The notes: generated by a model not told the origin, from the letters alone. A stretch of 64,000 bases of DNA from Chlorokybus atmophyticus (GCA_009103225.1 RHPI01001056.1:1-64000), one strand, 5' to 3'; numbered from the stretch's first letter, positions 1-38,845 are shown. Translations and numbers: made by a program.

Positions 1-1791
1 ATGGAGAAGGCTTTCGCGGGGGGCTTTGTACCAAGGCGCAGGGGAGGGCCTAGCGACAAGAACAACAAGGTGTGTGTCATGTAGTTACTAAGGTGTTCGT
101 GCGATGTGCATGTCTTCAGTGCCTTTGACATGTGCTTGATAGAAAGCCAACAAGAAGAAGCCCAAGATTTCAAAAGAAGTGCAATCTGCCAGCGATGACG
201 AGGATGCCACCTCAGAGGGTGACCTACAGTTTGCACAAAGTTGGCTTTGTCAATGTCGTGTTGAGAACGATGCTTTGTGTTTGATGGTGCCTTATGCATG
301 CAGGTTGTGTGGTGTGTATGATGACCCCTTGTAATTGCACGGCGCCCACGCGTTCACATCCCGCCAGCGATGCCAGCGACGACAGAAATGGCACCTCGCA
401 GCGTGAGCCGCGTCTTGCGCGCGCAGGCAGCTGCTGGAGTACTGTGTGTATATGCAGGCTTTTGTGATCGGTGCCTTGTGTATGCGATAGGTAACAAGGA
501 AGGCACTGCACCACAACCCTCAAGTTCTCCTGCTACTGGTTCACAGGTCAGATGCCGCTCCTGCTTGTACTTTGCTAAACATGTGTTCATGATCGTTCAT
601 GACTGTTGTGTTCAGGCACGTGCCAAGCAGGGTGCTGATGTGCGTGACAGCAGCTCAAGGAAGCGCAAAGTGTCTGGTGATGTACGCAGCATTGGACTTG
701 ATAGAGCGGCAATGCACTGAGTTGTGGCTCACCATCTGACTTCATGCTGTTGGCAGGAGGATGAGGTGTCAAGCCCCCCCAAAAAGAAAACAAACAAAAC
801 TGTTCGCTCGATACCGGCTCCCTACAAGTCTCAGGAGGCAGGCCACTCGACTGGCAAGCAGGAGACGGTGTTGGAGAAGAAGAGCGGCAAGCAAAAGGAG
901 GTATGAAAGCACCATGTACTTGATCTTATGGGCTTCTTGCGTTCTTCTGGCTGCACACAAACTGTCACCTGCGGCAGGCGCGCATTCGTTGCGTGACGGT
1001 TGTAAGCTTGTTAACACGTCGTGTCACCTTGTCGCAGGATGAGCCAACGTATTCAAAAATGCCTGAGACAGATAGAAGCGAGAACAGCGGTGAAGATGGC
1101 GCCAAGGACAGCGCCCCGGACAACGAGGGGGACAGCCCCAACAACAGCGACAACGACTCGCAGAAGGCAGGTCGCTTCGCAAGCGCTGTATGAGAGATCA
1201 CATCTGTGTATGTGTGTACCTCTTGATGTGTTTGTCACTTGCATGCGCAGGAAGAGCTGAGCGACAAGGACGACACCGCACCGACGATGAAGGTTGGCAG
1301 TGAAGTCCAACTGTTCATTAACGGGCGCAAAGAACCAGTAGGGGAGGCGCACGTAAGCGACATCAATCCTGTCAACAAGTTTCATGGCAAGAAGATTGGA
1401 GAGGGCAACATGGTGGTCCAGTTCAGCCGCAGTCTTCCCGTTACTAGGACCAGACGTCCCAGACCAGGGGAAGAAGAGGTCGTGCCTCTGCCAATCAGCT
1501 TCAAGCGTGATGGGGTTGGAGTGCAAGTGACCCACTTGAAAGGTGAACGCGTTTGTGTGCATGCGATTGCACGAACAGTTTCAACATTGTGCAAGTCAGC
1601 TGAGTTCATGTGTGGTTGATGTATGCGCAGAGTGCGAGCCGGGTTTGTTGCTACTTTGGCCTGTTGGGTTGCTGAAGAGTATCAAGGTGAGGGAGCCAGC
1701 AAAGGAAGGCACAACCACACAGCGCGGGAGGGGCCGTGGGAAGGGCAGCCGGGGTGGGCGCGGTGGGCGTGGTCGAGGCAGCAAGAAGTAG
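1..1791 (+). CDS. Spliced Tnp1/En-Spm-like (CACTA accessory, TnpA-type) protein, gene model approximate
   Basis: GT-AG exons joinable by eye (e.g. 1-69, 756-900, 1039-1149, 1251-1542, 1631-1791). C-terminal segment VQLFINGRKEPVGEAHVSDINPVNKFHGKKIGEGNMVV...LLLWPVGLL resembles the Tnp1/En-Spm-like (PF03017/DUF8039-type) domain; RGG-rich tail. Confidence 0.55.
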
Positions 1792-3239: not shown

Positions 3240-4620
3240 TGAGCAGAACCACTGATCTGTACACGCGCAGCTGTTAGCAACAAGCACCACCACCACCAAG
3301 ACAGTGCAGCAGTCGTTACCTTAAAGCCTGCCAGTATGTTGCTTGCACTCAGCCCTTGCACAAAGCATGGTTTGAGCATCTTCAGAAAGTCTTCGTTAGA
3401 TAGCCCTTTTACATGCCTGTGCGTGTTGAGCCATGCTTGGTACTCCCTCTTGTACACATATTAGATCTATTGAAGCATGCCACGTGCAGCACTTGCAGCC
3501 CGTGTGTCGTGTGTGGCGGGAGCACAGGATCTCCAGTCTTATGTCCTTGTCTATTGTACTAACATTGTACCGGCTAACGTGTTCATTACAGATCAGCAGG
3601 GTAGGATTATAAGGACTAATACCACCAGGCATGTTGAGCTGCAGGTGGTCAATCCACGTGGAGAAGTGCTCAGTGGTCCTCAATGCATTTTCTTGGCAGC
3701 TGAGGCTAGCACCTGGCAGGTCAAATGCGTCTCCCCATTTTGGATAGAGATGCTTGCCTGCTGGGATTTTTGTGGGAGGGATTGCAACTCCAGCTGCAGT
3801 GACAGCTGCCATTAATGCTATGTGCTGCCTCGCTCCAGATGTAGCCAGTTGTGCATATCTGGATTTGTTGTGCACAGGGTGTGTCAGTCATGTGTTGTGC
3901 TAGTAGTCAAGCTGCAACTTACACCACGTGCATGACATTAAGCTTTTCATTATGACTTGTGTGTTTTTCAAGGTAGAGTCTGGCTCAAAGCCGATCTCGT
4001 CGCAGGAGATGATACGGTCAGGCCCATCGTTATAAAGATAAGGACCTCCTTCAGGCGCTTAAAATAAACTTTGACAATCCACCTTCCAAAGCTGTGGCGC
4101 CTGCTGGCATCCACAGCTTCTGCCTTACGCTTGCTGAGCTTGTGCCTCTTCATGAAGAGGCACCCATCATGCACTATGTATGCCATCTTTGCGCTGCAGT
4201 CGTCTTGCATTGTTGAAGAGCAGTTTGCCTACGTGCACCTGAATGTCGTACTGCATCATGGCACACCCAATATCATTTTGCCATGTAAGCAATTGCATCA
4301 ACTTGCACTCCTCTTCAACAGTAAACAAGGTAGGCCTCTCCGCTCCTCTGAAATATGACATGTGTAAGCATGACCCCTTGCACTGTGGCACTCGCAAGCA
4401 TGTAACAACTGACATGCGCAAAACCAGAACTCACTTGTCTTTGTCTAAGCGCGCAGGGTCAGCAATGTAGTCCTTCATGGTTGACTCTGGCAGGCCAACC
4501 TCTCTTGCAGCCTCACACGCAGACATGCAGCCCTGCTTGGATGGTCTCTCGCACCTTGGGCAGCAGTGCTTCTGTTTCCTTCCTCTTTATATATGGCCCC
4601 CTCTTAGCTAACCTATAGGT
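3240..4620 (-). pseudogene. Decayed pogo/Fot1-like (Tc1-mariner superfamily) transposase: HTH-psq, CENP-B HTH, DDE_1
   Basis: Fragments in several frames: GCMSACEAAREVGLPESTMKDY; RPTLFTVEEECKL; ALMAAVTAAGVAIPPTKIPAGKHL...FSTWIDHL...PTLLICNEHVSRY; YKREY...DFLKMLKP...NILAGFK. Stops and frameshifts present. Confidence 0.75.
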
Positions 4621-4861
4621 TGGTTCAGCTATGCCTTTGCGCGCAGCTGAACCTGTTTGTTGGTGATGCGTTTTGCACTACCTGCTGCAGCCCTTCTCAC
4701 CTGCCAACAGAGTGCTTGAGATGAGGCACAGGGACATGCTTGCAATATGAACTACATGGGCGAGGATGAGAAGACCTCTGAGCCCAATAGTAGACAAGCA
4801 TAGCATTAGCCTAGCGCAGTAAACAGCAACTTACTTGTGTAGGCATAGCCTCCTTGCAATG

Positions 4862-5467
4862 TGTCATGCCTATCGCCCAAGCATGCCAGTCGTCATCGGG
4901 CATGCCTACAGCGAGACCCTCGCCCGGCTTACCAGCATGGCGACCCGCGCGCGTCACTGACCAGTAGCTAGGTCATGTCTCTAGAGTAGCTCATGACCAT
5001 AGCCTACACAGGCACCGCGCGTAGCTGTTCAGCTGTGAGTTCAATTATAAGTTGGGTTCTATATCGAGTGGGGATTTCCTGTGGAAATAGCCTCGATATG
5101 ACCGTTAGCTTATGTTCTGGACAGTCATGAGTTGACTTGTATAAGTAGGCACAGTGTTCACCGGATCAGCTGGTGACACTGTAAGTGAGAAAGCTAAGAG
5201 CTTGTGAAGCGACTTGAACTACGAAACACACTATCCCGGTTCCCAAGAATCCCCTCACCGTGTGAGAACCTGTGCATGTTCTTGTGCACTGTGCTTGTCT
5301 TTGCTGTGAGCTTTGTGTACTTGGTCGCGGTGTGCTTGTTGGCATCAGTCAGGGCATAGCATCCACGTGTTGCTTGCTCATTCACCTCACTTAACAGTGT
5401 AATTTCTCTTCCACTCATGCAAAGAACTGTGTAAACAGCACTACCTATAGTAGTGGCTTGTTGACTT
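4862..5467 (+). repeat. Terminal repeat A1 (606 bp)
   Basis: Direct copy of 15144-15749, about 13 substitutions by eye (11 transitions). Confidence 0.95.
5140..5145 (+). promoter_or_regulatory. TATA box of the retrotransposon; predicted TSS ~5172
   Basis: TATAAG about 30 nt upstream of the segment complementary to the PBS. Confidence 0.55.
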
Positions 5468-5478
5468 ACAGTGTCACC
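5468..5478 (+). other. Self-priming primer-binding site (11 nt, ACAGTGTCACC)
   Basis: 5464-5478 is the perfect reverse complement of 5172-5186. The A1/A2 identity ends exactly at 5467. No TGG-starting tRNA PBS is visible. Confidence 0.8.
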
Positions 5479-5677
5479 CTCTTTGCTCAAGTGAGTGTAG
5501 TTGCAGGCATTACATCAGCATCGCAATCTGTAGTTGTACACATCACAGTGCAGTGTTGTCACCGTCATCGCATAGCGCGCACAAGCGCTAGTGTGTTGGG
5601 TGATAGCAGCACTGGAGATCCCATTGTAGAGCACAAACACTCTACCCTTCATCCACTTTCACCATCGCATCAGCTGT

Positions 5678-7813
5678 ATGAGCAGGCCCACCCCTTTCTC
5701 GCCAATAGAAGAAGGGGACCTCAACAGCTGGAGCCCAACCTCCAACCTTACCTACGAGCGCGCAAGTGAAGGGAGCGATTACCGTAGCAGCAGAGGCTCA
5801 CGCCCCGTCTCCGGCTTCACCTCCTCTCACTCCACTCCTCGACAACGAGCATCTCCACCACCGTCGGACAGTGACGACGAAGAGATGGAGCCTTCCAGCT
5901 CAACCAACTCCCTACGCTTCTCCGGACGCCCTGGCACCACCTCACTTGACGAGTTCATCATCAAGTTCCACTCCAAGATGCGGCAGCAAGCCCTCAAGAG
6001 CAAGGACTGGACAGATGAGGTATCGTTTCATGTGTCCGCTCAATACCTTGATCACGAAGCACATGATGTGTGGAAGTCCGTCGCTGAGTTGCACAAGATT
6101 GATGGCTATGGCGAGTTGGCCAGCACAACAGCCGCCACGTCACTGCACAGCCCATCGGTTACTGTTCCTGTAGCAGCGGCCCCGCCCGCCTCAGTCACGG
6201 GTCTCACTCTAGCTGCAGCCATGGAGAAGGCAGAGAATGAAGAAGTTGAGGTGGTAGTGGCCTCATTGACTCCTGCAGAGATCGAAAGCAAGAAGGCCGA
6301 GCGCCGGATCAGGATACTCAACCGCACCGCTGCCATCATCAGGGAGCAACAAGAGGAGCAGCAAGCTGCAGCATTGGAGATGGGTACGCCCCTGCTACCA
6401 ACACCGAACTCGCGTGCTCCAGCGGGAGGCAGTGTTTTCACCCTCGGCTCAGTGGCATTGCGTGCACCCGCGCTCACGGTGGGCGCGGCCATGTCGGACT
6501 CCCCGTTGAAGGACCTCTACGCCGCACTCCGGCGCACCTTCCCACCTCAAACCAACAGCAAGGTGGAGGAGTTGAGGCGTTTTCGACGGAAGCCCAACGA
6601 GGACCCTCTCCGACTGTATTCACGGTTGGAAGGGTTGCTTAAAGACACTGACTACAAGATCGTCAGTGAGGAGGCGGCAGCAGTGGTGTATGTGGCCGAG
6701 TTGGATCCCACCCTGAGTGAGTCAACGCGCCTGACGCTGAACTACAGCAGGCCCCTCGGCTACACCCTCAAGGAAGCTTTCGAGACTGCACAAGCCATCC
6801 ACAAGCGCGCAGTGTATGAGAAAGCGGTGCTGGACACCAACCGCAGTGCCTCGCGGCCTATTGCAGGCACAAGTGCAGAGCCTCTTCGGCGGGACCGCAG
6901 CCGAGAGCCGCAAGGTATCCACAACAAGGATAAACGGTCAGCTCATGCTGCCCTTGTGGCTCCAGTGCTGTGCCACCGGTGTGGTCGACATGGCCACTAC
7001 CAAAAGGAGTGCACCGAAGATTACGGCAACCTTGTGTGCGACCACTGCCACAAGACGGGACACTTGGAGACAGTATGCTGGCTCAAGTTCCCTGAGCTGC
7101 GGCCCTCTATTGGCTACAACAACGGCAACAACGCTGTTGGCTACCGCGGTAACAACAGCAACAACAACAACAACAACAACAACAACAACGGGGGCTACAA
7201 CAACAGCAACCACGCTGGCGGCTACAACAACAGCAACAACGCTGGTGGTCGCAACAATGGCAACAACGCTGGTGGCCACAACCCCAACCTCAACAACAAC
7301 GCTGGGGCCCGCAAGGAAAAAGCTGGCTACAGAGGGAAAAACCTCCCTCCACAGCACAAAGGACCTGAGGGACGTCCTCGCGCTGGAGCTGCTGCTGTAA
7401 AGGCACCAACCAATCCACCAGCTATTGACCAAGTGGCAGCCCTGATGGCGCGCGTGGCACAGCTGGAGGAGAACAAGGAGCGGGACTATCAAGCCTGCTA
7501 TGCTGCTAGGTGGGCACTGATGGCACCAAAACGGGATAGGGACACTCCCACGCCGTCACGCGTACAACCATCAAGACGTGCGCGCAGGGAAGCTGGCGCG
7601 TCGTCAACAGCGGCATCGTCGGACGCCACAAGTGGTGCTGCCTCGGCAGCCACAACCACTGCTGGGATGACGCCGTCGACGACGCCGTCGACGACTCCGT
7701 CGGCGTCCACACCGACCACGACAGCAGGTCAGCACTCTTGGCACCACGCTGTCCCCGGTGATGGAAAGCACCCACGCCGCAACAACCATGGTCGTTGGGT
7801 TCGAGGGTGGTGA
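5678..7813 (+). CDS. gag: Gag with two CCHC zinc knuckles and an Asn-rich (AAC)n tract; frameshifted near 7730 into the pol frame
   Basis: CHRCGRHGHYQKEC and CDHCHKTGHLETVC at 6971-7078; gag-like ELRRFRRKPNEDPLRLYSRL; AAC repeats at ~7115-7295. Confidence 0.9.
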   Translation: MSRPTPFSPIEEGDLNSWSPTSNLTYERASEGSDYRSSRGSRPVSGFTSSHSTPRQRASPPPSDSDDEEMEPSSSTNSLRFSGRPGTTSLDEFIIKFHSKMRQQALKSKDWTDEVSFHVSAQYLDHEAHDVWKSVAELHKIDGYGELASTTAATSLHSPSVTVPVAAAPPASVTGLTLAAAMEKAENEEVEVVVASLTPAEIESKKAERRIRILNRTAAIIREQQEEQQAAALEMGTPLLPTPNSRAPAGGSVFTLGSVALRAPALTVGAAMSDSPLKDLYAALRRTFPPQTNSKVEELRRFRRKPNEDPLRLYSRLEGLLKDTDYKIVSEEAAAVVYVAELDPTLSESTRLTLNYSRPLGYTLKEAFETAQAIHKRAVYEKAVLDTNRSASRPIAGTSAEPLRRDRSREPQGIHNKDKRSAHAALVAPVLCHRCGRHGHYQKECTEDYGNLVCDHCHKTGHLETVCWLKFPELRPSIGYNNGNNAVGYRGNNSNNNNNNNNNNGGYNNSNHAGGYNNSNNAGGRNNGNNAGGHNPNLNNNAGARKEKAGYRGKNLPPQHKGPEGRPRAGAAAVKAPTNPPAIDQVAALMARVAQLEENKERDYQACYAARWALMAPKRDRDTPTPSRVQPSRRARREAGASSTAASSDATSGAASAATTTAGMTPSTTPSTTPSASTPTTTAGQHSWHHAVPGDGKHPRRNNHGRWVRGW

Positions 7814-9819
7814 ATCCACCACTCCTGCCTCCATCGAAGCGACCACATCGGCCGCAACTGCTGCCACCCTCACAGCCGCCACCTCAGTAACGACGGCTGC
7901 TGCCGGTGCCACCACCATCGCCTCCAGTAGTGCTGCCACACCCACTGCACCACTTCTTGAGATTCGAACGGCACCGCCACCAGCACTTGACGTCACACAG
8001 CAAGTGCCACGCGGACCACATGCAGAACGCGCCTGGGCGTCGGTTCTACGCAACGTGGAGCCCACCACCATTGCGTACGAACTAGGGGGGCAACGCACCA
8101 CGCACGTGGCACGCGATGATCGCATCTTGCCCCTACCACCTTCAGAGTACCACACGCTGCCAGAATCCACACAATAGCAGCTGGAGAATGAAATCCTCGC
8201 CGGCACTGCACCAGAGATGAGGGATCGTCTCTTCGGGGTCACCTACCGGCGACCTGCAGTGTTAGCACTGGCCATTCAGTTGTTCTTGGCATTACACGCA
8301 CAATTGCAGGGCGCACCCATTCAAACGCGGCAACCCATGCCCGCTCAGCAGATCGACTTCGAGCCCTCGCCACTGGACCCACTCGGACTCCAGCGCCACA
8401 AAATACAAGACGTCGTGGTCACCATGTCAGACATCGCGCTAGGCGCTGACCCCGCTCTCCGGGGGCTCACTCCAGGCAGTTGTCAAGAGCGTTTCTCTGC
8501 CCTCGAACAGGCACATCGTTATCAGGTGGACCAAGCTGCCCAAGTGGATGCGCGCCGACAGGGGTACGAAGCAGCACACGCCGTTATCGTACCAACCGTA
8601 GCTCCAGCAAATGTTGCCAGCGCCTCCACGGCGCTGACCACAGGGTACTCCACGGCAGTCGCCATCGAACAGCCAAGACAAGCAACTGTTGCAGACCAAG
8701 CGAGGGCGTTGGCGCAACAATTGAGGGGGGTAATCGCCCCGCTGTTGCCTGCTTTGGTCGAAGACATGCCTGAGGATCAACGCGATGCAGGGCGAGGGTA
8801 CCTCACCCCGCAAGGGGACACCACACAACGAGGAGGAGCTGGTATGGTGGGGGAGCAACAACTCCGTACCGCACTCATCCGGCAAGCAGTCATGTTGCAC
8901 AGGCCTGAGGGCAACACATTAAGACAGATGATGGGGATGCAAGAGGGCAGCGCCGCTCGAGCCCGTCTCGTGACATGGCTCGTTGCCAATCACCCTGCTG
9001 TCCCCCTGTTTGCCTTTGGCAACCGAGCATCATGGTTGGGGGCATTCGTTCGTTCGCTGCGACAAGCATATGACGAAGCTGCCACCACAGCCCCGGACAC
9101 GCTGGAGGGAGTGCAAGAGGCAATGCTGCGGCTGCCAGGGGTGGAAGCCGCACGACAACGGCGGCGCATCGCCATTGCTCATGAGCTACACGCACAGCAG
9201 ACCGACCTCCAGCGCACCCTACGCGCGCGCGCCATGACCGTGCTCGATGTGGGAGTGGTACAAGGAAGGTGGGATGCCTACATGGCAGGGATCTTGCGAG
9301 TCCCCACCATCACTCGCGACATGCGGCGACAGCTACTACGCGCCGTATACCTGCAGCCCATGCCTCAATATCATCATTGGACCGACACAGACACCGAGCC
9401 CACGGCCACGTGGGAAGGGACGTTGGTCAGAGAAGCGGCTCATGCTATCCGATGGACGTACGCCACGGAGCAAGCTGAATGCGAGGCAGGCCCACAAACA
9501 CCGGGTCCGCCGGGGTTTCCTCCACAGCCATTGGGTACACCCGCGGGCATGATTCCATCTTCGCAGAGGCGGCATCCACCTGCGCCGCCACCACAACCAG
9601 CGCCGAAACCTCCAGCACCGAGGCCCCACCGTGTCTACCAACCACCACAACAAGGTCGGTTCGGCAGAGGGAGAGGGCAAGGAGGGGGATCTCCGGACCC
9701 AGCAGGCAGAGGAGCTCTGGCTGCAATGCGCTCAGCACCCCCAGCTGAGAGAACTGAGGCAAAGGTGCAGACAGCTCGTATGAAGAGGCTGCGTATCGAC
9801 GCCAATGCTGCCATGGTGG

Positions 9820-10200
9820 TCAACCAAGGCAAGCACGTTACCATTAACGGCCTGGCACCCAAGCGAGTGATGTTGGACACCGGAGCACAGCCTGTCATCA
9901 TCGGGCGCTTCCTCGCGCGTTCCCTCGGCATAACCAGCTCCGACTTGGTGCCTTGCCCGTACATGTTGGACACTGCCACAGGTAGCCGAGATAAGGTGAT
10001 GGGAGTCACCAGGGAGGCCTTTTGCATTCGGTTGACAGGGCTGGACCCAACCCACACAACCGAGATCGTCCAGCAATGTGTGGTTACCAATGCCGGCTCC
10101 TTCGACTTTCTGCTTGAGCAGGACTTCAACTTTCTTGTGGGCATGGGCCTCGACTGCTGAACAGAGCGAGCGTGGTTTCGGCCACATTGGGATGAGGATG
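9820..10200 (+). other. Retropepsin aspartic protease domain
   Basis: VMLDTGA (catalytic D at 9876) and FDFLLEQDF. Confidence 0.85.
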
Positions 10201-10599
10201 ACGGAGAGGTGCAGGGTTTCCTGCCTCTCGAGTTGGTCTCGCGCACGCGCGCCCAACGCAAAGTGGCTGCCGTGGCCACACGCAGCCACACCCGCACACG
10301 GGAGGCTGCGACGGCCACATACGACGGCGCTCGGACGCAAGTCGCTGCTTGTGCCACGGCCCCGTGTCGAACCGTCGACTCCTCTCCCACCCCGTACAAC
10401 GAGGAGCAGGAGGATGCCACCGTGGAAGTAGCATTGCAAGACCCAGCTGAACGGCGCTGGCGCGCACAGGTGGACGCACACGTCTTGCTCAGCCATCCAT
10501 TGATCACCACGCGCTTCCCCAACTACCTAAGCCACAACAAGGTGCAGGACCACCATATGGTGGCCACCGGAGTGGTGGAGTTCCACACCTTTCGCAGGC

Positions 10600-11570
10600 A
10601 ACAGGGCATCACAGTGTTGGAGCTGTTTGGAGGCATCGGCAGTGGTCTTGCTGCGATCCTCAACACAGGTGTGAAGGTTGTCAAATACTATTACCGCGAC
10701 CCAGACCCACATGCGCAAACGGTCCTCAAGCACCACTTACGCCAACTGCACGAAAGGTATTCACGTCAACTACCCCTCTTGGCGTTGCAAGGCAGCCTCA
10801 AAGCATTGCCACAAGACATGCGGCTGATCACCGAAGATCACCTACTGTCCCTCGGCAACGTCGACCTATTTATAGCTGAGTGGGAATGCTAAGGGCACTC
10901 CAGGGCAGGCAAGGGACAAGGCTTCGAAAACCCTCGCTCCGGGCTGTTTTGGGAGCTGATGAGAATCATCCACCTCCTTCAACACCACCAAATCTCCAGA
11001 CCCCTGGGGTATGTCATCGAAAATGTACATTCAAAGGACGACAAGCGTCCACACGTGGCCTCCAGCTACCGACAAGTTTGCTCCATTCTAGAGCACCCAC
11101 CCAAGGTGAACGCTGCATGACATGGCTCGCGCGCACATCGTGTACGTGCCAAATGGACAAACTTGGCCGCCGTGGAGGAACTCATGGCCGCAGAGTACAC
11201 GCGCAGCGCTCGGCCGTGCAAACTGCTGGTCGATGACATCCTTGACCCCAGCCGCAATGCACAACCTGTCCTGCATCATGACCACCACCACTTCTACCCG
11301 CGCAATCAGCCCGGTCAACCCCGTCGCGCACTCCCCACATTGGTGTCCTACCCGGGCTCCTACGCATTTCGGAACGGTGGTGACGGGATGGTGTTTGATG
11401 CGACCACCAACAAGCTAGAGGAACCCAACGCACGCGAACGTAAACGCGCCATGGGATTCTTCCCCAACAGCATCACGGGTTCATCGCTGACAGATAGTCA
11501 GCAATGCCAGCTGCTTGGCCGCGCCATGGACCAGAACAGCATGGTATGGTTGCTGGAGCTGAGTTTCGCA
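10600..11570 (+). other. C5 cytosine DNA methyltransferase domain within Pol
   Basis: Motif I VLELFGGIGSG (10614-10646); motif IV DLFIAEWEC*GHSRAG (Cys at 10887); motif VI YVIENV (E at 11019); motif VIII HRVRAKWTN; motif IX ERKRAMGF; motif X LLGRAMD. Confidence 0.9.
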
Positions 11571-11789
11571 TTGCAGGACCGCCACGTGTCCTTCGAGGAT
11601 CTGGAACACTTGGCTGGGGGGTGGGCTGATTGCGTAGCCAACAGGCACACCAAGGCAGCTCACACAGCCCTTGAGGTGGTCCACATGGATGAGCAAGCAG
11701 CAGTGACAGTGGAGGACATTCCCGTGGTCGCCAATGCAACCTCCTGGGACCATGCCATTGGCCCGTTGGCCACAGAAGACACTTGAGAG

Positions 11790-13140
11790 AAGCTGGAGGC
11801 TCTCCTCAACAAATGGAGGAGCCAATTCAGCTTCAATGTGAAGGAATTAGGGACGTGCTCAGTGTACCAGATGGACATCGAGCTGGTGGACACTGAGCCG
11901 GTGTTCCGGCGACAATACAGGCTCTCCAAGTTGGAAGAGGACCTGGTGGAACAGAGATGTAAGGCGCTGCTTGATGCAGGCCTTATCGAAGAGTCCACAT
12001 CGGACTTCGCAGCAGCAATCGTCATGCCACTGAAGAAGGATTCAGCAGGCAACTAAACAGAGCGACGCATGTGTGGCGACTATCGCCCCCTCAACAACAA
12101 GACCAAGCAAGACAGGTACCCCATGCCCACAGCAGAGGGTATCTTTGATGATGTGGGAGACTGCACAGTCTTCAGCATCCTGGACATGCGTCAAGGGTAC
12201 AACCAAATCGCCATCAAGGACGAGGACAAGCACAAGACCTCCTTCTGGGGCAACCGACAGTTGTACCAATGGAAGGTAATGCCGTTCGGGCTGAAGAATG
12301 CCCCAGCCAAGTTTCAACGCGTCATGGACAAAGCCTTGAAGGGGCTGGACTGCGCGCGGTGCTACATCGATGACATCCAGCATCTTCAGCACATCGAAGC
12401 AGTGCTGGAACGACTCAAGGGAGTGGGGATGACCGTACACCCCGACAAGTGTACCTTCTTCACCCACAAGGTGCCGTACTTAAGGCACATGATTGTGCCC
12501 CATGGTGTGTATGTGCAGCAGGCAAAAGTAGAGGCTCTGGCAGCTATCCCCGCCCCGACAGACCTCACACGTCTGCGCGCTTTTTTGGGACTTGCCAACT
12601 ACTATCGCCGGTTCGTGAAGGACTTCGCAAAGATCGCAAGGCCCCTCAACGAGCTACTGAAGAAGGAGGTGGAGCTCGCATGGAAGGAGCCGCAACAGCA
12701 GGCCTTCGAGGAGCTGAAGAGCAGGCTCACCACCGCTCCCATCCTTCAACGTCCGGACTACGCCAAGCCTTTCATCCTTCACACCGACTGGAGCAAGCTG
12801 GGGATGGGAGCGGTGCTGGTGCAGCACGATAAGAACAAGAAGGAGCGGGTGGTGTCATACGCCAGCCGAAGAAACAACGGCGCCGAGGCCAACTACAGCA
12901 GCTACGAAGGGGAGTGCCTCGCTGCAGTGTGGGCCATCTCCTTCTTCCGACCTTTCCTCTTTGGTCGGCAGTTCCAACTAATCATCGATCATCAGCCCCT
13001 CAAGTGGCTGATGACCAACCAACATCTGACAGGGAAACTTGCTCGATGGGCCCTGCTGTTGCAGGAATACGACTTTGACATCGACCACCGCGCTGACCTC
13101 ACCATCCAAGACGCCGATGGCCTCAGTCGCAACCCTCACC
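11790..13140 (+). other. Reverse transcriptase and RNase H (Ty3/Gypsy type)
   Basis: RRMCGDYRPLN, LDMRQGYNQI, VMPFGLKNAPAKFQR, CYIDD; RNase H FILHTDWS...YSSYEGECLA...IIDHQPL. Confidence 0.97.
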
Positions 13141-13559
13141 TCAGCACCAACGACGCAACTGGAGCTCGGCATGAGCTCGTCCCTGCAGCAACAGCCCCCA
13201 CCATGGCAGCCATGTTTGCTGCTGCCGCGTTGCGCTCATGGCGCAAGATCAACACCACGGCCTCAGTAGTGGCAGAGGAAATTCTTGCCCTTGAGCCTAC
13301 CGGCCCTGCGGCAACCACACCCTTGGGAGACGCCCACGCAACCGACATTGACGTCGATAACACAGAGCTGGCGCCCACTGACACAAGGCAGGACATATGG
13401 CAGGACAAGCCATTACTTTCCTTTCTTCAAAGTGGCCAGCTTCCCTCCGGCATGAGCGCTCGAGAGAAGGACCGAGTCAACCAACGCACCCGTCACTATC
13501 GATGGGCAGGCGACAAGCTGTATCGCCGCTTCCACGACGAAGACAAGAAAGTGCCGACA

Positions 13560-14680
13560 CCGGTCACGCGCGAGGGCATCATCACTTCCCTCCACACTGA
13601 GCTTGGACACTTCGGTGTCAAGCGTACAGTCAGCCTAGTGAGGGCACGATATTGGTGGTATGGGTTAACAAAACAGGTGCAGGGGTTCGTCAGCCACTGC
13701 CAGCAGTGTGACATGGTGCGTGCCAGCCTCAACACGCGTAGCGCCACCTTGCACCCACTCCCCATCTCCGGTCTCTTTTATCGATGGGGACTCGACATAT
13801 TGAGGGACTTGGCACCCTCAGCGCGTGGCAACCGTTACATCCTGATCATGATTGAGCACTTCTCCAAATGGGTGGAGCTGGTACCATTACCCGACAAGAG
13901 CAGCAGGGGGGTGTCTCAAGCCTTCCTCTCTCACCTTCTCAGCCGATTTGGCAGCTGCACCGAGGTCATCACTGACCAAGGTACTGAGTTAAGAGGGGAA
14001 TTCGACACCCTCTTGGACAAATGTTACATCGACCACCGCCGTACCTCGCGTGATCACCCTCAAGACGACGGCCTCGCCGAGCGTACAGTACAGACCATCA
14101 AGAAGGCACTCCGCAAGTACGTGCTGGAGTACGAGAAGAACACTTGGAATGATCACCTCCCGTGGGTGGCCCTCGGATATCGATTGTTAAAGCAGCGGCT
14201 CTGCGGGAGTACAGCCCGTACTACCTGCTGTTCGGGCGACCACCATTGCTCCCCTTCCGTGCGCAGCAGGAGGTGGATCGCGTCGTGAACAACCTCGACG
14301 ACCCTGACTGGATGCACCACGACATCACCACGCGCGCCGCGCTTTTCGAGCGCACCATCCCCATGGCCTTCAACAACCTGCGCATTGCGCAGCATTGCGA
14401 CACGCTGCGCTACGAGCGCGTATGCAGCGGCTTCTACAAGGAGCGCCAACGGCGGTTCCAAGCGGGGGACTTTGCCTATCGCATGGCAGCCACCAAAGAC
14501 ACGCTTGACACCTCCGTAGGCCGCACCGTCTACAAGGTACTCAAAGTGTACCCCACAGGGGTGCTGGACCTCCTTGGTCAAAACGGAGAGAGGTTGAAGG
14601 ACAACATGGTGAACTGTGCGCCATGTCACCTTCCTTACGTAACCGGCTTCGGGCGTATCCAGCACCCTCGTCCCGCGCGC
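13560..14680 (+). other. DDE integrase with HHCC zinc-binding domain
   Basis: HTELGH...CQQC; D at 13794, D at 13974, E at 14079 (34 residues between the last two by my count); SPYYLLFGR after the frameshift. Confidence 0.95.
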
Positions 14681-14689
14681 AGCACACGC

Positions 14690-14824
14690 TGTGAACGCTG
14701 CGGCAGCGCCGGCGACGACGCACTTATGATGCTGTGCGATGGCTGCAACAAGGGCCTGCATTGCTACTGCCTGGAGCCACCTCTGGACGCGATACATATG
14801 GAGGAGTATTGGTGCGACGATTAC
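14690..14824 (+). other. PHD finger at the integrase C-terminus (last Cys mutated to Tyr)
   Basis: CERC-x8-MLCDGCNKGLHCYCLEPPL-x8-WCDDY, a C4HC3 pattern. Confidence 0.85.
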
Positions 14825-14891
14825 CGTACCAACGGCCCTCCTCACTTGCGCTAGCAATTGAGCTCTGGAGCTGGAACCTCCCCCCGAGCCC

Positions 14892-14899
14892 AGGGGGGG
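14892..14899 (+). other. Polypurine tract AGGGGGGG
   Basis: Lies immediately after the pol stop region and abuts repeat B1. Confidence 0.75.
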
Positions 14900-15141
14900 T
14901 GGCTTGTTGACTTTGTGTGCTACAGCACAGCATGTACACTAGGGAGAACACCGACTCCACCTGCCCGTACTACCCAGCAGCAGCAGACCAGCTGCACAAA
15001 GCACTTGTCACCATGAGGGTTTGGGTCATCTTTTGCTTTTGCTGCACGTTGCACAGGTGGCGCAGCAGCATGTCCACCACAGCATGGCTGTCCATGCAGC
15101 TGTCTGAGACAGCGTGACCCTCGACTCCCCTCGACCCGACA
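14899..15141 (+). repeat. Terminal repeat B1 (243 bp)
   Basis: Direct copy of 15735-15977, about 6 substitutions by eye; ends in GACA. Confidence 0.95.
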
Positions 15142-15143
15142 GC

Positions 15144-15749
15144 TGTCATGCCTATCGCCCAAGCATGCCAGTCGTCATCGGGCATGCCTACAGCGAGACC
15201 CTCGCCCGGCTTACCAGCATGGCGACCCGCGCGCGTCACTGACCAGTAGCTAGGTCATGTCTCTAAAGTAGCTCATGACCATAGCCTACACAGGCACCGC
15301 GTGTAGCTATTCAGTCGTGAGTTCAGTTATAAGTTGGGTTCTATATCGAGTGGGGATTTCCTGTGGAAATAGCCTCGATATGACCGTTAGCTTATGTTCT
15401 GGACAGTCATGAGTTGACTTGTATAAGTAGGCACAGTGTTCACCGGATCAGCTGGTGACACTGTAAGTGAGAAAGCTAAGAGCTTGTGAAGCGACTTGAA
15501 CTACGAAACACACCGTTCCGGTTCCCAAGAATCCCCTCACCGTGTGAGAGCCTGTGCATGTTCTTGTGCACTGTGCTTGTCTTTGCTGTGAGCTTTGTGT
15601 ACTTGGTCGCGGTGTGCTTGTTGGCATCAGGCAGGGCATAGCATCCACGTGTTGCTTGCTCATTCACCTCACTTAACAATGTAATTGCTCTTCCACTCAT
15701 GCAAAGAACTGTGTAAACAGCACTACCTATAGTAGTGGCTTGTTGACTT
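15144..15749 (+). repeat. Terminal repeat A2 (606 bp)
   Basis: Copy of 4862-5467; separated from B1 by GC. Confidence 0.95.
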
Positions 15750-15977
15750 TGTGTGCTACAGCACAGCATGTACACTAGGGAGAACACCGACTCCACCTGC
15801 CCGTACTACCCAGCAGCAGCAGACCAGCTGCACAAAGCACTTGTCACCATGAGGGTTGGGGTCATCTTTTGCTTTTGCTGCACGTTGCACAGGTAGCGCA
15901 GCAGCATGTCCAGCACAGCATGGCTGTCCATGCAGATGTCCGAGACAGCGTAACCCTCGACTCCCCTCGACCCGACA
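15735..15977 (+). repeat. Terminal repeat B2 (243 bp), overlapping A2 by 15 bp
   Basis: Copy of 14899-15141; followed by TSD AATG. Confidence 0.95.
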
Positions 15978-16712
15978 AATGCAACTCCCTCCCACCAAGT
16001 TCGTGTGCTCACACAGCAACTTGCATGCCAGCAATGTCCCCAGCTACTTGCATCCACTCAAAGTAGCAGCTACCACTCAGCACAACACTAACATTTAGTC
16101 AAACCAACAACTCATACGCGCTACGACAAGCACCAAACACCCCCATATATGATAGTTTGCACAATACAATTGGTTGCGTTAAGGGTGGCATACCAACTTT
16201 TTGTTTCCTATCTAAATAGGCTGCAACTCTGTGCTAAGTTGTAATTCCTATTACATATATTATGCAACAAACTCTGCATTAATAGCTACCCCCAATCAAG
16301 GGTTATAGCTATTGCAAATTTTAAAAATGTTACGACAACACGCGATAGGCTTGCCATACCAACTTGCTCAAATCTTAATCAATTAGACTAAAACTCTATG
16401 GAATATTGCTTTATTTAATAACTTGAGCGTTGCAACAATCGCACCCCAAAATGCTTTGCCATTCAAAAGTTATGCTAGTTACAAGCTTTTAGCTCGCATT
16501 TTTCCTAAACTATATATATTCAAAATTTATATCTCCCGCTATACTGCTTCAAACGCAATGCCGTTTGAATTGGACGGTCATCATAAAACGAGCTTAACAG
16601 TCCACAAGAGTCCATCACCATCCAAATAAAACAGCGCAGACAACGCTCACAAAACCGCCATTGCCGAAATAAGGGCAGGCGACCCCAGGTCCTAGCGACT
16701 TTGCTAGCAAAA

Positions 16713-20127: not shown

Positions 20128-20955
20128 ATGGCGGAGCGCATTGTTGACACCCAGACCGGCAGCGTCCCACTCAAGGTGTGTGTTGGATGCTTGATACCGC
20201 TGCGCTTGTACACCTTGTGTGCTATCCTTTGCTTACTGTTGGTAGCCTTGGTATTGCTCTATGGTCGCATGCATGGCACACTGATTGTTTGAGGTGTGCA
20301 CGGTCGTTAGAACTTCCTGCTACCGGCTGTACACCATGCAAGTATGCACCATTGACTGGTTTATTACTGCAGACGCAAGAGACTGTGGAGACCGAGGTGC
20401 CCATGACCAGGACCGTCGAGAAGCCATATGTCGAGAAGTATATGGACACGGAGACCCGCACCGTGATGCGCCCTGTTGAGGAGGTCGTGGAGGTTGAGCG
20501 TGAGCGCACGGTTATGCGCCCGGAGACCGAGACTTATTTGGGCAAGCAGACCAACGTGGTTGAGCGGGAGTTCGTCCAGCCCGTGGAGCAGGTCACCATC
20601 GTCCGCGCTGTGGGTGCTCCCCAGGCTGTCGGCGAGAAGGTCGTCGCAACCGGTGAGCCTGTCCCCACAGAGCGCATTAGCAGCGTGCCTGCTGGATCTG
20701 ACGCATACGCCACCACCACCACCACCGCCTACGACACCACCGAGACCTATGGCACCGACACCACCGGCACCACTGCCTACGGCGAAGAGCCCCACAAGAA
20801 GGTGAGATGGGAGTTCACTTTGCATCAGTATGTCTTACGTGGATACCCTGGCTACAGCAACTTACAATCAACGTTGTATGCTGCAGTCTTTGGTGCAGAA
20901 GGCCAAGGAGGCAGTGACCCACACCATCGACAAGGTCACCGGCCACAAAGCGTAA
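20128..20955 (+). CDS. Small hydrophilic Val/Glu/Thr-rich protein with a dehydrin/LEA-like C-terminus (3 exons, ~181 aa)
   Basis: Exons 20128-20175, 20373-20801 and 20887-20955 join in frame with GT-AG; ends HKKSLVQKAKEAVTHTIDKVTGHKA. TATATAA at ~19985 and a G-box CACGTG at ~19949. Confidence 0.7.
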
Positions 20956-21409
20956 ATGAGTTGGCAGTATCGCTACCCTTCACCTGTGTACAAAGCGGGC
21001 GACGCACATGTATACACGTTAGTCTAGATAACTTTGCTCATTTCGCAGCGTAGAGCTTTCTACATTTGGTACTTGGAAACTACACTGTTGCTGGCCCTTG
21101 TACATTTCTGGGAGTTCAATACCTTTTTCTACTCATTCAAGTCTTTCTGTGTGCTGCCTCTGCACTAGCCACTCGAGTTATTTTTCAATTGGACATGCTA
21201 CTGTTGCCACCCTTACATGGTTGAAAAATCAGTACCTTACTCCACTAGAATTTCTGCTGTATGTTGTTTGCAACCAATGCTGCAATTGTAACACAGTTTT
21301 TAGAACATGGTACATGCCGCAACCAATACTGCAAGCTATATCTACCTATTGAATGTGCAGTTTGCAAACGTTGTAAAGCAGCAAGCTGTATGCAATATTT
21401 GATTGTGAA

Positions 21410-21682
21410 TGCAACGGTTTTGCAACCCATATCATGATTATTTTGCAGTAAGCAGCATGCAAACAACCTACAACCAATAAAACTGCCGATATTTAACTAC
21501 AGTCCAATTACTTTTGAACGAAATGGTTTTGCAACCCATATCATGATTGTTTTGCAGTATGCAGCATGCAAACGGCCTACAACCAATAAAACTGCCGATG
21601 TTCAACTACAGTCCAATTTGCAGTAAGCAGCATGCAAACGGCCTGCAACCAATAACTGCCGATGTTCAACTACAGTCCAATT
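21410..21682. repeat. Tandem repeat (~110-bp unit twice plus a ~60-bp third copy)
   Basis: TTGCAGTAAGCAGCATGCAAAC...CAACCAATAAAACTGCCGATG...AACTACAGTCCAATT occurs three times. Confidence 0.8.
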
Positions 21683-21744
21683 ACTGTAAAAATGCACCGA
21701 ATGCTACGTCTGCATCACTGAATGTATCAGTCAATAGCATGGAC

Positions 21745-22390
21745 TGTAAATGCAGGTTGGACAGATTGTGTGTGTTGTAAGGATAGTTGCAGAAGCAACA
21801 AACAATTCTGTGCTGATGGATAATCATAATATTTGGCGTTTACTGAATATTCTCTATGCGGATGGTTACTCATACATTTCTCCACAGATTGTTCATGTTG
21901 TTTGCATGCTGAGGTTTACCCGGTCATGATAGCAGTAAGATAATAAACAACCTGTCGAGAAATAGACGAGTAACAAATCGCGTGTGTTGCAAGGGTAGCT
22001 GCAGTAGCAGTAGCAGTAGTTGCAGCAGTAGTTGCAGCAGCAACAAGCAAACCTGTTCTGATGGATAATCAAAGTACTTGGCGTTTGCTGAATACTCTCT
22101 ATGCAGGTGGTTACTCGTCTATTGTTGCACAGATTGTTCATGTTGTTTGCATGCTTAGGTTTACCCGGTTATGATAGCAGTAAGGTAATGAACAACCTCT
22201 GGAGAAATAGACGAGTGACCACCTGCATAGAGAGTATTCAGCAAACGCCAAATACTTTGATTATCCATCAGAACAGGTTTGCTTGTTGCTGCAGCAACTG
22301 CTACCGCTACTACTACTGCAATTACTGCTACTGCTACTACTGCTACTGCAACTACCCTTGCAACACACGCAATTTGTCCAACCTGCACTT
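21745..22390. repeat. Direct duplication plus long inverted repeat (foldback/MITE-like)
   Basis: ~230-bp unit duplicated in tandem; 21973-22123 is inverted at 22206-22377. Confidence 0.85.
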
Positions 22391-23652
22391 GTAGTCCATG
22401 ATGCTGATATTGGCAGTCAGAAGCTAGGTATATGGCGACAAGCACAAACCTGCTTATATATACAACAACGTTCCAAGAATTCGGTGCATGCTACATGTAA
22501 ACAGTATCACGTAATGCTGGTGACCGTCGTGCAAAGTGCACTAGCACTGCTTATTCAGGTTGGAACGTGTTGCTTGGTCACGACCATGCGCGGCTTCCTC
22601 CACACGGGTACACTCGTATGTAATAATAGTTGCTTTATAATGGTTAGTATACTTGTTCATGTAAATATCGTGAAACATAACGCATCGTATACTCCACACA
22701 TTGTGGTATGCAATGATTGCTGGTTATGTGTCGCTTATGTATCGCACACACACATTGCGTGTGGGCATGCAAACATGGACATACTGCACATTTTCCCTCT
22801 TGTCAAATTGAATGCTTACATAATAGTGACGATAGTATATTTGTTAATTGCAATATGTTAAGTCATATGTGATTTCGTTGTTGAGTACGCAAACCGCAAT
22901 TTTTTGCTCGATGGAGTGTAACACTGATATTGCAATGTAACATACATGTAAAGATGGATTCTTTTTGTAGATATTATAAAAGGCATAAAGATTCGATTTT
23001 TGTAGGAATAGCAACCACGTGCGTGAATGACAGTGCCACCCGGTTTGGCTTGAAGCATGTATACTTCATGCGCAACCCGTATTATTGAAATAGATTGTAT
23101 ACAAATTTGAACGTTACACACAACAGTCACTTGAATTACAGTGTGATAGTTATAACATATACCAGATTCATCTGCTATGATTATACATGCGATTGAAGCT
23201 CATAAACAGAAACGGAGCACAATAAAGCACTTAACATGTAGGTAGGCGTGAGCAACCAATGTCTGTGCCTTAGCGTACAACACTATGCATTATGCACATG
23301 TAACTAGCCATTTTGTTTAAGGTTGATTGTTTACATGAGCGCTACGAGACACTGATAGCATGTTTCCGCATGATATCCATCAAATTGTAGATTATAAACA
23401 CGCGCATATGTATGTGTTACATCAGAATCGTGCATGATGGAGGTATACACGAATACAAGAATAGCCAATCATGAAACCATCTGATGATCGTTTACATTAT
23501 ACACGCATGGATGACGAGGCGTCGTGTCAACATGCGTGACGAGGTACTGCGTACAACTTATATGTCATGATAAGCACGACACCTGCACTTCAAGACTCTT
23601 GACGCAAGAGAAGGTTGCTCGAGTACATGTATTGACAGCCTGGTGACATGCC

Positions 23653-24148
23653 TGTAACCGGATCTGTGCGAGGTCCCGGTGCCGTCACATCACATCACCT
23701 CCCCTCCCACCCACCATGGCGGCGGCCGCTGTCACATCATGCGCAAGCCAGAAGCCACGCATCACACAGAGGCCTCCCCAAGAAAGAATGGCAACCTGGC
23801 GTACACGACACCCGCCGCAACCCACGCCGGCGGGGGGGGGTCAACGTCAGTGCTTGTGAGGGATGGAGGGAATGGCTGGTGGGCTCCCTGTGCTGCACCA
23901 ACCACAGGTGTAGGCCTTATCATTGAGACATGTGTTCTTTACCCTGCACTTGGTTCCCCTTCCTCTGTTCGATGGTCCTAGGAGGACCACAGAGGGGAGG
24001 AGACCGCCAATGCATGTGAGGAGAGGGGGTAGAGGCAGTCCCCTCGCATAGTCCGCTCCAAGCGTGGAGCACGACAGCCGCTAGGGCAATGATCAAGAGG
24101 AAAGAAGATAGATGGTCTTGGCGGCATGGGATTGATGCTCAGGTTACT
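23653..24148. mobile_element. Possible degenerate solo LTR
   Basis: TGTAAC...GTTAC ends flanked by TGCC on both sides, but the terminal A is missing. Confidence 0.25.
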
Positions 24149-29913: not shown

Positions 29914-30164
29914 CGGGGGTGAATGGTGTATCGGTAGGTGATCAGAGTTGACTCACACTATTGTTGGGGCTTTTGTGGCTGTATGTGTGCTCGCTGTGCG
30001 TGACACGCACAGCGCGCATTCAATAGCCAAAGAGCTTGTTGACGTATATACATTGGTGTGCAACTTAACATATGTTATAAGAGCATAGACTCATGGTACG
30101 GAACAACTTCCGTCCGATGTTGTATACAAGAGTTGTCTTTGCATCTGTCGTCTTCAAACTGATG

Positions 30165-38452: not shown

Positions 38453-38845
<393 letters not shown>

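Follow-up and report, generated by a model that had tools for sequence, protein, structure and literature searches.

A streptophyte Ty3/Gypsy element with split direct repeats and a DDE integrase in Chlorokybus atmophyticus

Results

Architecture and coding content of the element

The stretch of Chlorokybus atmophyticus DNA analysed here (the window; 64,000 nt, GCA_009103225.1 RHPI01001056.1:1-64000) contains, at positions 4862-15977, an inactive copy of a streptophyte Ty3/Gypsy lineage, probably of the KnitGypsy-Dnmt3 type (Table 1). The gag and pol genes are framed by two direct repeats, A and B, in the order A1-gag/pol-PPT-B1-GC-A2-B2, where PPT is the polypurine tract. The A copies (606 nt) differ by 13 substitutions and no indels (97.9% identity) and the B copies (243 nt) by 6 substitutions (97.5% identity); repeats so long and so alike cannot have arisen by chance. 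The 5' end consists of A alone and the 3' end of B-GC-A-B, and two matching terminal LTRs are absent, as they are throughout the split-repeat clade described below. The termini, TGTCATGCC... on the left and ...CCCGACA on the right, are flanked exactly by the target-site duplication (TSD) AATG, and the dinucleotide GC between B1 and A2 completes the palindrome GACAGCTGTC. A and B share a segment X of 15 nt (GTGGCTTGTTGACTT), with which A ends and B begins; it is found at 5453-5467 and 14899-14913, and a single time where A2 meets B2 (15735-15749). The first-pass annotation of the window had placed the four repeats, their order, the TGTC...GACA ends and the duplication exactly as we find them, to the base. 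No further copy of A, of B or of the whole element was found in the window, and this element is the only copy of its own family at hand.

The Gag protein contains an Asn/Gln-rich stretch encoded by CAA repeats (7117-7300). The domain order in Pol is PR-DNMT remnant-RT-RH-H2C2/DDE integrase-PHD, with Pfam matches in the order Asp_protease_2, RVT_1, RT_RNaseH, Integrase_H2C2 and rve, and the best PDB match is Ty3 Gag-Pol (7q5b, E 1e-81). The integrase has the HHCC motif and a D,D(35)E triad, in which the two D residues are invariant and E671 is at least 90% conserved (21 homologues). TG...CA termini and a 4-bp TSD, as in Ty3/Gypsy elements, are present, and no ORF on either strand matches a tyrosine recombinase or Phage_integrase. 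The earlier identification of a Gypsy element with a DDE integrase is therefore upheld by the Pfam set, the Ty3 match, the catalytic triad and the lack of a recombinase match. The nearest Pol is that of a Coleochaete scutata transcript (53-55% identity).

The methyltransferase region matches PF00145 with E 3.8e-5, above the Pfam cut-off. A motif I-like LFGGIGSG and a motif VI-like ENV share its frame; the domain is broken by stops and is thus a remnant. The C-terminal part of the integrase and the PHD finger can be reached only via a frameshift near 14190-14198. This frameshift and the five in-frame stops in pol render the copy inactive. Eight flanking ORFs of at least 200 aa have no Pfam match.

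Table 1 Features of the element in window coordinates
Feature	Position	Strand	Remarks
Left TSD copy, AATG	4858-4861	+	Identical to 15978-15981
A1, 5' terminal repeat	4862-5467	+	Starts TGTCATGCC, left integrase end; 97.9% to A2
Block GGTGACACTGTAAGT in A1	5172-5186	+	Exact reverse complement of PBS
TGTAA motif near A end	5430-5434	+	From sequence; second at 5398-5402
Putative self-priming primer site (PBS) ACTTACAGTGTCACC	5464-5478	+	Includes last 4 nt of A1
gag ORF, 711 aa	5678-7813	+	CCHC zinc knuckle at residues 432-447; ORF and Pfam
pol, single reading frame	8217-14285	+	Domain searches
pol: aspartic protease	about 9837-10040	+	
pol: C5 DNA methyltransferase remnant	about 10572-11500	+	Pfam match in piece 10893-11117
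pol: in-frame stops	10158, 10890, 11118, 11784, 12054	+	
pol: integrase H2C2	13566-13724	+	RT and RNase H upstream in same pol
pol: integrase DDE core	D 13794, D 13974, E 14079	+	D576, D636, E671
Integrase C-terminal part with PHD finger	14189-14854	+	PHD about 14690-14818; domain search
Polypurine tract AGGGGGGG	14892-14899	+	Immediately 5' of B1
B1, internal B copy	14899-15141	+	Ends ...CCCGACA, right integrase end; repeat comparison
Palindrome GACA-GC-TGTC	15138-15147	.	B end meets A start; junction read, relatives alike
A2, second A copy	15144-15749	+	Repeat comparison
B2, terminal B copy	15735-15977	+	Shares 15-nt X with A2; ends ...GACA; repeat comparison
Right TSD copy, AATG	15978-15981	+	Identical to left copy

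The split layout is native to a clade of related elements

About 30 related loci, which come from several metagenomes and at least four named genera, have the same split layout, recorded as A-int-B.A-B or B.A-B. Among them are loci from Klebsormidium nitens (L084; TSD TCTT/TCTT), the liverwort Calypogeia fissa (L086; TSD GTCA/GTCA, repeats 99-100% identical), Closterium (L085) and Marchantia (L087), a further locus (L001) and about 20 moss-type metagenome loci; L023, L051 and L053 also have perfect 4-bp TSDs. In a tree of RT-RH sequences, built with a length filter below which L084 fell, the split-repeat loci form one clade (support 100/99), within which the window element groups with the Closterium and liverwort copies. 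Chromodomain relatives with ordinary LTR pairs (L088, L089) form the sister clade. The split layout A1-PBS-gag-pol-PPT-B1-GC-A2-B2 is native to this clade, and integration at the TGTC...GACA ends makes 4-bp duplications. A candidate counter-example, L003, with a 789-nt repeat pair, proved to have PPT-B.A, its A2 being interrupted by foreign sequence; the contig then enters gag, probably because the assembly walked through A.

The K. nitens sequence P0069 is a strong match to the window Pol (E 5e-143, 38-42% identity). Locus L084 of the same species encodes DNMT, RT, RH, IN and PHD in the domain order of the window element; its junction reads GGCA-GC-TGCC, its 4-bp TSD is perfect and its putative self-priming site is 19 nt long. 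The window element resembles KnitGypsy-Dnmt3 in its Gypsy domains, in a Dnmt3-type methyltransferase within Pol and in the A-coding-B-A-B repeats; it differs in that Pol is only about 38-42% identical and in that the window copy is decayed, with just a remnant of the methyltransferase.

Primer site and polypurine tract delimit a B.A unit

Of 26 related loci, 24 have a G-run immediately 5' of B1. At the other boundary, we rejected a tRNA-type PBS, as no TGG-type site follows A1 and a self-complement accounts for the position. The PBS is complementary over 15 nt to a block within A1, a length reached by none of 1000 shuffles, and is predicted to pair with this block in both MFE and centroid folds. 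Such complements occur in five lineages (15, 19, 12, 12 and 16 nt; reached by 0-1 of 1000 shuffles). These sites are alike in position, adjoining A1, and unrelated in sequence. The earlier proposal that the PBS lies at the end of A and the PPT at the start of B is thus borne out by the G-runs and by the self-complementary site of five lineages.

Together, PPT and PBS delimit a B.A unit, not the terminal repeats. Because the PPT adjoins B1 and the PBS adjoins A1, the reverse-transcription LTR would be B.A, with the integrated copy as a permuted form of it, as the first-pass annotation had reasoned. The integrase sites would lie abutted inside this LTR as a CAGCTG palindrome, which resembles an LTR-LTR circle junction and would be the site that integrase recognizes and cleaves.

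The 5172-5186 block would represent the 5' end of the genomic RNA and act as a self-primer, as in Tf1. A1 would then comprise the promoter part of U3 (4862-5171), followed by R and a short U5. We take the TGTAA at 5430-5434 to be a candidate green-algal poly(A) signal, in which case R would end near the A terminus.

Templated junctions are constant and the A2-B2 joint is variable

All copies examined agree at the PPT|B1 and A1|PBS junctions, and between ..CA and TG.. the B1.A2 spacer has a length of exactly 2 nt in 21 of 21 copies. On old copies, where the automatic palindrome search was noisy, junctions were read directly. Compensatory change between GC and AT spacers was considered and rejected, given AC and GT intermediates and transitions only; the spacer variation appears to fit deamination of a CAG/CTG site better.

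At the A2-B2 joint, even sister copies are set apart by indels; blunt joints, a 2-nt loss using AT microhomology, gains of 1 and 6 nt, and a deletion were seen. Because the joint varies while every templated junction is constant, it appears to be made anew, and imprecisely, at each insertion. The copies that show this heterogeneity are old (repeat pairs about 80-94% identical) and the context is AT-rich, and a mutational hot spot may be an alternative source of it. The overlap X, seen in the single copy of the window family, may be either constant or accidental. Two Logan unitigs (L090, L091) end exactly at the B end, but since this is a branch point of the graph, their ends carry no information on the RNA.

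Discussion

In ordinary LTR retrotransposons the two LTRs are identical, and integrase acts on their outer tips. The clade described here, which extends across streptophyte algae and bryophytes, appears to have moved these tips inside the LTR and still integrates via a DDE enzyme. We consider it probable that the window holds an inactive copy of a KnitGypsy-Dnmt3-type element with a B.A LTR, internal integrase sites and a joint made de novo.

We infer the transcription start, the poly(A) site, the ends of the linear cDNA and any circle from sequence. Under the standard scheme of reverse transcription, the RNA would start inside A1 (about 5172), and minus-strand synthesis would be primed by the RNA's own 5' end, as in Tf1. 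The product would be a linear DNA of the form (B.A)-PBS-genes-PPT-(B.A), with the LTR B-GC-A. The physical ends of this molecule would not be integrase ends; both integrase ends would lie abutted within each LTR in the CAGCTG-centred palindrome, like the junction of a 2-LTR circle or an IS circle. The observed copy would require the end of A to be joined to the start of B, after which the palindrome in the LTR next to the PBS would be opened by integrase. The joint might arise by host end joining into a 2-LTR circle, by joining after strand transfer or by a third template jump. Our preferred guess is that the plus strand, as it is finished, makes an end-to-end template jump to the opposite end of the molecule; such a jump would also account for the fact that only one of two possible permutations is seen. 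The other, A-B.A-genes-B, was never seen in about 30 loci, and a plain circle model is incomplete because two identical palindromes predict this permutation too. Regarding the first-pass suggestion of a DDE retrotransposon that converged on a circle-based, split-repeat life cycle, the split repeats with a DDE integrase stand, and a circle step would be consistent with a joint that appears to be made de novo.

Two alternatives have next to no probability in our view. The first, that an ordinary Gypsy element was rearranged once or was misassembled at this locus, would agree with the single copy of this particular family in the window. However, the layout, the palindrome and the geometry of PPT and PBS are found in about 30 independent loci, which refutes it as an explanation of the architecture, and the TSD exactly flanks the A1 start and the B2 end. 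The first-pass annotation had named paired LTRs in other copies, or a misassembly, as what would speak against its reading; full-length copies in the named genera share the split layout, and since assemblies made independently from other species show it as well, misassembly is excluded as the cause of the architecture. It is equally hard to credit that the element belongs to the tyrosine-recombinase retrotransposons (PAT, Ngaro or TOC type) or is a hybrid between one of them and Gypsy. Those groups are characterized by split direct repeats, but no such recombinase domain was detected in any frame tested, the H2C2 domain and the DDE core with conserved D, D and E are present, and Ty3 is the best structural relative. 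The TG..CA ends and 4-bp TSDs also argue against it, as tyrosine-recombinase elements make no TSDs (PMC4157794).

The other two alternatives concern how the integrating DNA is made. With the same B.A LTR, the host could supply the substrate: non-homologous end joining would yield a 2-LTR circle, of which integrase would open one palindrome. The joints are like end-joining products (blunt, 2-nt microhomology, small insertions or deletions), the window joint has 15 nt of microhomology, and PFV and HIV-1 integrases are reported to cleave palindromic 2-LTR circle junctions (PMC1180852, PMC1905944, PMC4372172). This route predicts both permutations equally, whereas only A-genes-B.A-B is seen, so that an extra bias toward the PBS-proximal LTR would be required; we regard it as possible but rather unlikely. 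We think it distinctly improbable that the element replicates in a DIRS/PAT-like way but integrates through another enzyme. The RNA, nearly full-length, would then run from inside A1 to inside B2, no LTRs would be made, B1.A2 would be the template restoring the missing ends, and the A2-B2 joint would be inherited via the RNA. PAT-like, Ngaro and VIPER elements, which include TOC1 and kangaroo of green algae, indeed have the identical layout, A1 ... B1-A2-B2 with the internal pair 3' (PMC4157794, PMC6681497), and de Mendoza et al. call the Klebsormidium repeats the same as those of a DIRS element. However, the conserved PPT at the B1 start and the conserved, putative self-priming site at the A1 end agree with the LTR scheme and would have no role in this one, the A2-B2 joint varies by indels between sisters while the templated junctions are constant, and the TGTAA motifs are close to where A ends and not to where B ends.

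PAT-like, Ngaro and VIPER elements use a tyrosine recombinase and make no target duplication, whereas the window element has an HHCC/DDE integrase, TG..CA ends, 4-bp duplications and Ty3-like RT/RH. Bacterial insertion sequences of the IS3/IS30 type integrate from a circle with abutted ends, their DDE enzyme acting on a left-right end junction with a few bp between; they are DNA transposons without reverse transcription, and the resemblance is an analogy of mechanism only. As in Tf1/sushi and Tcn1-type elements, a tRNA-type PBS is lacking and the site after the 5' repeat complements a block within the repeat (PMC6317226, PMC2864245). Those elements have paired LTRs and a chromodomain, whereas in this clade the repeats are split and a PHD finger is present. 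The complementarity here is strong and keeps its position; the complementary block may be the RNA 5' end and may be released as the primer by RNase H. In the PFV and HIV-1 reports cited above, the integrase ends are likewise abutted (...CA-nn-TG...) and can be opened to integration-competent ends. In retroviruses, cleavage of this junction is a side or salvage route acting on a by-product; in this clade it is permanent, is inherited in every LTR and would be the sole route.

The first-pass annotation had left it to the literature whether such an element was already described. The layout itself is already known from the relative KnitGypsy-Dnmt3, for which it is stated in the legend of Fig. 4c of de Mendoza et al. 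(2018, Nat Commun 9:1341; PMC5890265). That one sentence leaves the repeats unexplained, and the paper gives nothing on PBS, PPT, junction, TSD or mechanism. Our search for Gypsy elements with split or permuted LTRs found nothing beyond this legend, the split layout going unmentioned in Neumann 2019, Novikova 2010 and a 2026 DAM-LTR preprint. It is an evenly balanced call whether this lineage, whose conservation extends from Klebsormidium to liverworts, is the first among LTR retroelements with integrase sites permanently inside the reverse-transcription LTR. In such a lineage full-length cDNA alone would not be integration-competent, and no insertion would succeed unless its ends were first joined de novo (in a circle or by a third template jump) and integrase then cleaved the abutted-ends palindrome, which would be a DDE counterpart of the tyrosine-recombinase split-repeat life cycle.

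If the B.A-LTR model is true, the abutted-ends junction, a dead-end or salvage by-product in retroviruses, is an obligatory substrate here. Retroviral-type integration would then be linked to the circle-junction chemistry of bacterial IS elements, and the DIRS-type split-repeat layout would be independent of a tyrosine recombinase. Because its members carry chromatin-related domains (DNMT, PHD), the family is relevant to the epigenetic conflict between transposons and hosts. Standard LTR finders, which are based on paired LTRs, will miss or mis-annotate such elements in algal and bryophyte genomes.

About one third of the moss-type copies have the form A-genes-B, without A2-B2, and have good TSDs (L051, ATGG; L053, TTTT). 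These copies may be B1xB2 deletions, or may stem from direct integration of a piece cut at both palindromes.

Structure and coding content of the element

The Ty3/Gypsy element in the window adds a new, decayed member to a lineage in which a split-repeat layout had been noted without ever being explained. The coordinates and order of its direct repeats A and B, its termini and the AATG target-site duplication (TSD) reported in the first-pass annotation all proved exact on re-comparison. The element begins with TGTCATGCC and ends with CCCGACA. A GC dinucleotide between B1 and A2 gives rise to GACAGCTGTC. The final 15 nt of A and the initial 15 nt of B are identical, and this segment, GTGGCTTGTTGACTT, is present in single copy at the A2/B2 joint. 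Further copies of A or B were absent from the 64-kb window. G+C content is 56-61% over most of the element (window 4001-16000) versus 46-52% in the flanking 2-kb bins.

Features of the split-repeat element (window coordinates)
Feature	Position	Description
TSD	4858-4861, 15978-15981	AATG on either side
A1	4862-5467	606 nt; 13 substitutions, 0 indels versus A2
A2	15144-15749	Partner of A1
B1	14899-15141	243 nt; 6 substitutions versus B2
B2	15735-15977	Partner of B1
GTGGCTTGTTGACTT	5453-5467, 14899-14913, 15735-15749	15 nt shared by A end and B start
GACAGCTGTC	15138-15147	B1-GC-A2 junction
PBS	5464-5478	Complements 5172-5186, 15 nt
gag	5678-7813	CCHC knuckle
pol	8217-14285	Single frame; aspartic protease, C5 DNA-methyltransferase remnant, RT, RNase H, H2C2 zinc domain, DDE core
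Methyltransferase remnant	10572-11500	PF00145 match within piece 10893-11117
In-frame stops in pol	10158, 10890, 11118, 11784, 12054
PHD finger	14690-14818	Integrase C-terminus, beyond frameshift near 14190

The identification as a Gypsy element with a DDE integrase was borne out by the domain set, by the retention of D576, D636 and E671 (across 21 homologues both aspartates are invariant and E671 nearly so) and by Ty3 Gag-Pol as the closest solved structure (E 1e-81). The methyltransferase remnant retains in frame a motif I-like LFGGIGSG and an ENV(-like) motif, with a stop at the expected position of the catalytic Pro-Cys motif; the corresponding domain is preserved well enough to be scored in the Klebsormidium nitens relative (locus L084, 9189-9947) and in locus L001. 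A PHD finger is found in most homologues of the split-repeat clade, and the sister clade has a chromodomain in its place. Because pol contains five in-frame stops and a frameshift and the repeats have diverged by 2.2%, the window element is, judged from its sequence, an old, dead copy.

The interior of gag (7117-7300) contains CAA/AAC-rich imperfect repeats, giving an Asn/Gln-rich stretch. Outside the element, eight ORFs of 200-342 aa (window 20178-39006) had no Pfam matches.

Distribution of the split-repeat layout

Homologues of Pol with 40-55% identity occur in streptophyte algae, liverworts and plant-associated metagenomes, most of them ending in a PHD finger. Self-comparison of each of 91 fetched loci (L-numbers) revealed the full arrangement A1-genes-B1-nn-A2-B2 in K. 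nitens (L084; repeat identity 97-98%, TSD TCTT/TCTT), Calypogeia fissa (L086; 99.4% and 100%, TSD GTCA/GTCA), Closterium NIES-54 (L085) and about 10 metagenome loci. The 3' portion, B1-A2-B2, was found in Marchantia (L087), L001 and about 10 more loci, where the 5' end lies beyond the contig. B is shorter than A in every lineage (99-243 nt versus 287-850 nt). An RT-RNase H tree (62 rows; L084 left out by the length filter) places the window element and every split-repeat locus included in one clade (100/99); the chromodomain relatives L088 and L089, with ordinary LTR pairs, fall in the sister clade. The layout is thus recurrent across these lineages, and the possibility raised earlier that the window copy was the only permuted one, a one-off rearrangement, does not hold. 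L084 carries DNMT, RT, RH, IN and PHD domains and is therefore of the KnitGypsy-Dnmt3 type.

Putative priming sites and the B1-A2 palindrome

As the first-pass annotation had proposed, a polypurine tract (PPT) adjoins the start of B and the primer-binding site (PBS) the end of A. A G-run lies immediately 5' of B1 in 24 of 26 loci. No tRNA-type PBS follows A1; instead, a stretch of 12-19 nt that overlaps the end of A1 by 0-4 nt is the exact reverse complement of a block within A, 108-308 nt upstream. In the window, the PBS includes the last 4 nt of the 15-nt segment shared by A and B. The complement measures 19 nt in Klebsormidium, 16 nt in the moss type (a metagenome family of related split-repeat loci), 15 nt in Closterium, where one base is mismatched, and 12 nt in Calypogeia, with the same geometry and unrelated sequences across lineages. 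The observed length was attained in only 0-1 of 1000 shuffles, and the predicted RNA fold pairs the PBS with its upstream block. This self-complementarity reads as the signature of Tf1-type self-priming (PMC6317226, PMC2864245).

In the window and the moss type, B ends in ..ACA and A starts with TGTC... The spacer between B1 and A2 measures exactly 2 nt in the named genomes and in each of the 21 moss-type copies; it is GC in young copies, giving CAGCTG, and the L001 junction is a perfect palindrome of 20 nt. Older moss-type copies have AC, GT or AT, sister copies being alike, and the four spacers differ solely by transitions. This pattern is consistent with decay, by deamination, of a methylated CAG/CTG site.

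Proposed replication and integration route

In the standard scheme, the LTR extends from the first base after the PPT through the last base before the PBS. Since the PPT adjoins B1 and the PBS adjoins A1, the LTR unit under this scheme is B-GC-A (B.A). An RNA starting in A1 and ending in A2 would be reverse-transcribed into B.A-PBS-genes-PPT-B.A; TGTAA motifs occur close to the A end, at 5398 and 5430. The tips of this predicted linear molecule (B start and A end) are not TG..CA, and both integrase ends would lie abutted inside each LTR, resembling a 2-LTR-circle junction. The integrated form would correspond to the linear molecule with B relocated from its left tip to its right, and its formation would therefore need a joint between A end and B start, together with opening by integrase of the palindrome in the PBS-proximal LTR. 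Cleavage of such palindromic junctions of 2-LTR circles has been documented for the integrases of PFV and HIV-1 (PMC1180852, PMC1905944, PMC4372172).

A plain 2-LTR circle offers an incomplete account, as its two identical palindromes would lead one to expect the form A-B.A-genes-B as well, but none was present among the loci examined. In the route that we favor, plus-strand synthesis would be completed at the A end by the last active polymerase, which could then jump to the minus-strand 3' end, at the B start, and copy B up to the left-LTR palindrome. Such a jump would give rise only to the observed permutation.

For an RNA ending in A2, the A2-B2 joint would never be reverse-transcribed and would have to be rebuilt each time the element inserts. 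The moss-type boundaries of PPT with B1 (G-run+ATACATGA) and of A1 with PBS (AAT/TCTAGAAAAAC) are indel-free in the copies examined, with scattered point substitutions in older ones. The A2-B2 joint of this family takes at least six forms, including blunt, -2 nt via AT microhomology, +1, +6 and deletions. A tree built from the templated LTR sequence shows these forms intermingled, and the close relatives L006, L059, L026, L022 and L004 have five different joints. A mutational hot spot could also generate such variety, and the copies with varied joints are old. From sequence comparison, we regard the variety as the trace expected of imprecise end joining or end-to-end template jumping. The 15-nt overlap at the window joint is extreme microhomology, compared with 0-4 nt at most in other lineages; it may have arisen by chance in a single joining event, or it may be built-in homology that aids end joining.

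About one third of moss-type copies consist of A-genes-B without A2-B2 and end exactly at ..ACA. Relatives of this form are L018, L033, L051, L053, L054 and L061, and also L030, L032, L039, L044 and L080. In the tree such copies are interspersed with full ones, and two have perfect 4-bp TSDs (L051, ATGG; L053, TTTT). These copies may be deletions between B1 and B2, or may represent a second integration product, the simplest outcome of cutting linear cDNA at both palindromes.

Relation to known elements

Split repeats in the order A1...B1-A2-B2 are the defining feature of tyrosine-recombinase elements of the PAT-like, Ngaro and VIPER groups, which have no TSD (PMC4157794, PMC6681497). The window element has this repeat order in common with them but has a 4-bp TSD and no tyrosine recombinase on either strand. 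The literature search that the first-pass annotation had suggested found the layout already in print for Gypsy in one figure legend, without further analysis (de Mendoza et al. 2018, PMC5890265); plant LTR-element surveys make no mention of the layout. The earlier observation is thus confirmed and its interpretation supported. Several points are new, as far as the literature found. The lineage reaches from Klebsormidium to liverworts and contigs associated with moss; it carries a putative self-priming site, a candidate palindromic attachment site inside the predicted LTR and 4-bp TSDs; and there is evidence suggesting that each insertion makes the A-to-B joint anew.

Additional features of related loci

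L065 contains a second, inverted B.A-B unit (9279-9967, minus strand) about 4 kb past the 3' end of its first element. In L003, A2 is interrupted by a foreign insert (6554-8680) in which a pair of 789-nt direct repeats (99.7% identity, tips ACACCCCG...CGGGGTGT) flanks 549 nt; this is possibly a small non-autonomous element. Just upstream of the conventional chromodomain Gypsy in L089 lie ORFs matching the Dam-like MethyltransfD12 family (782-1593, minus strand).
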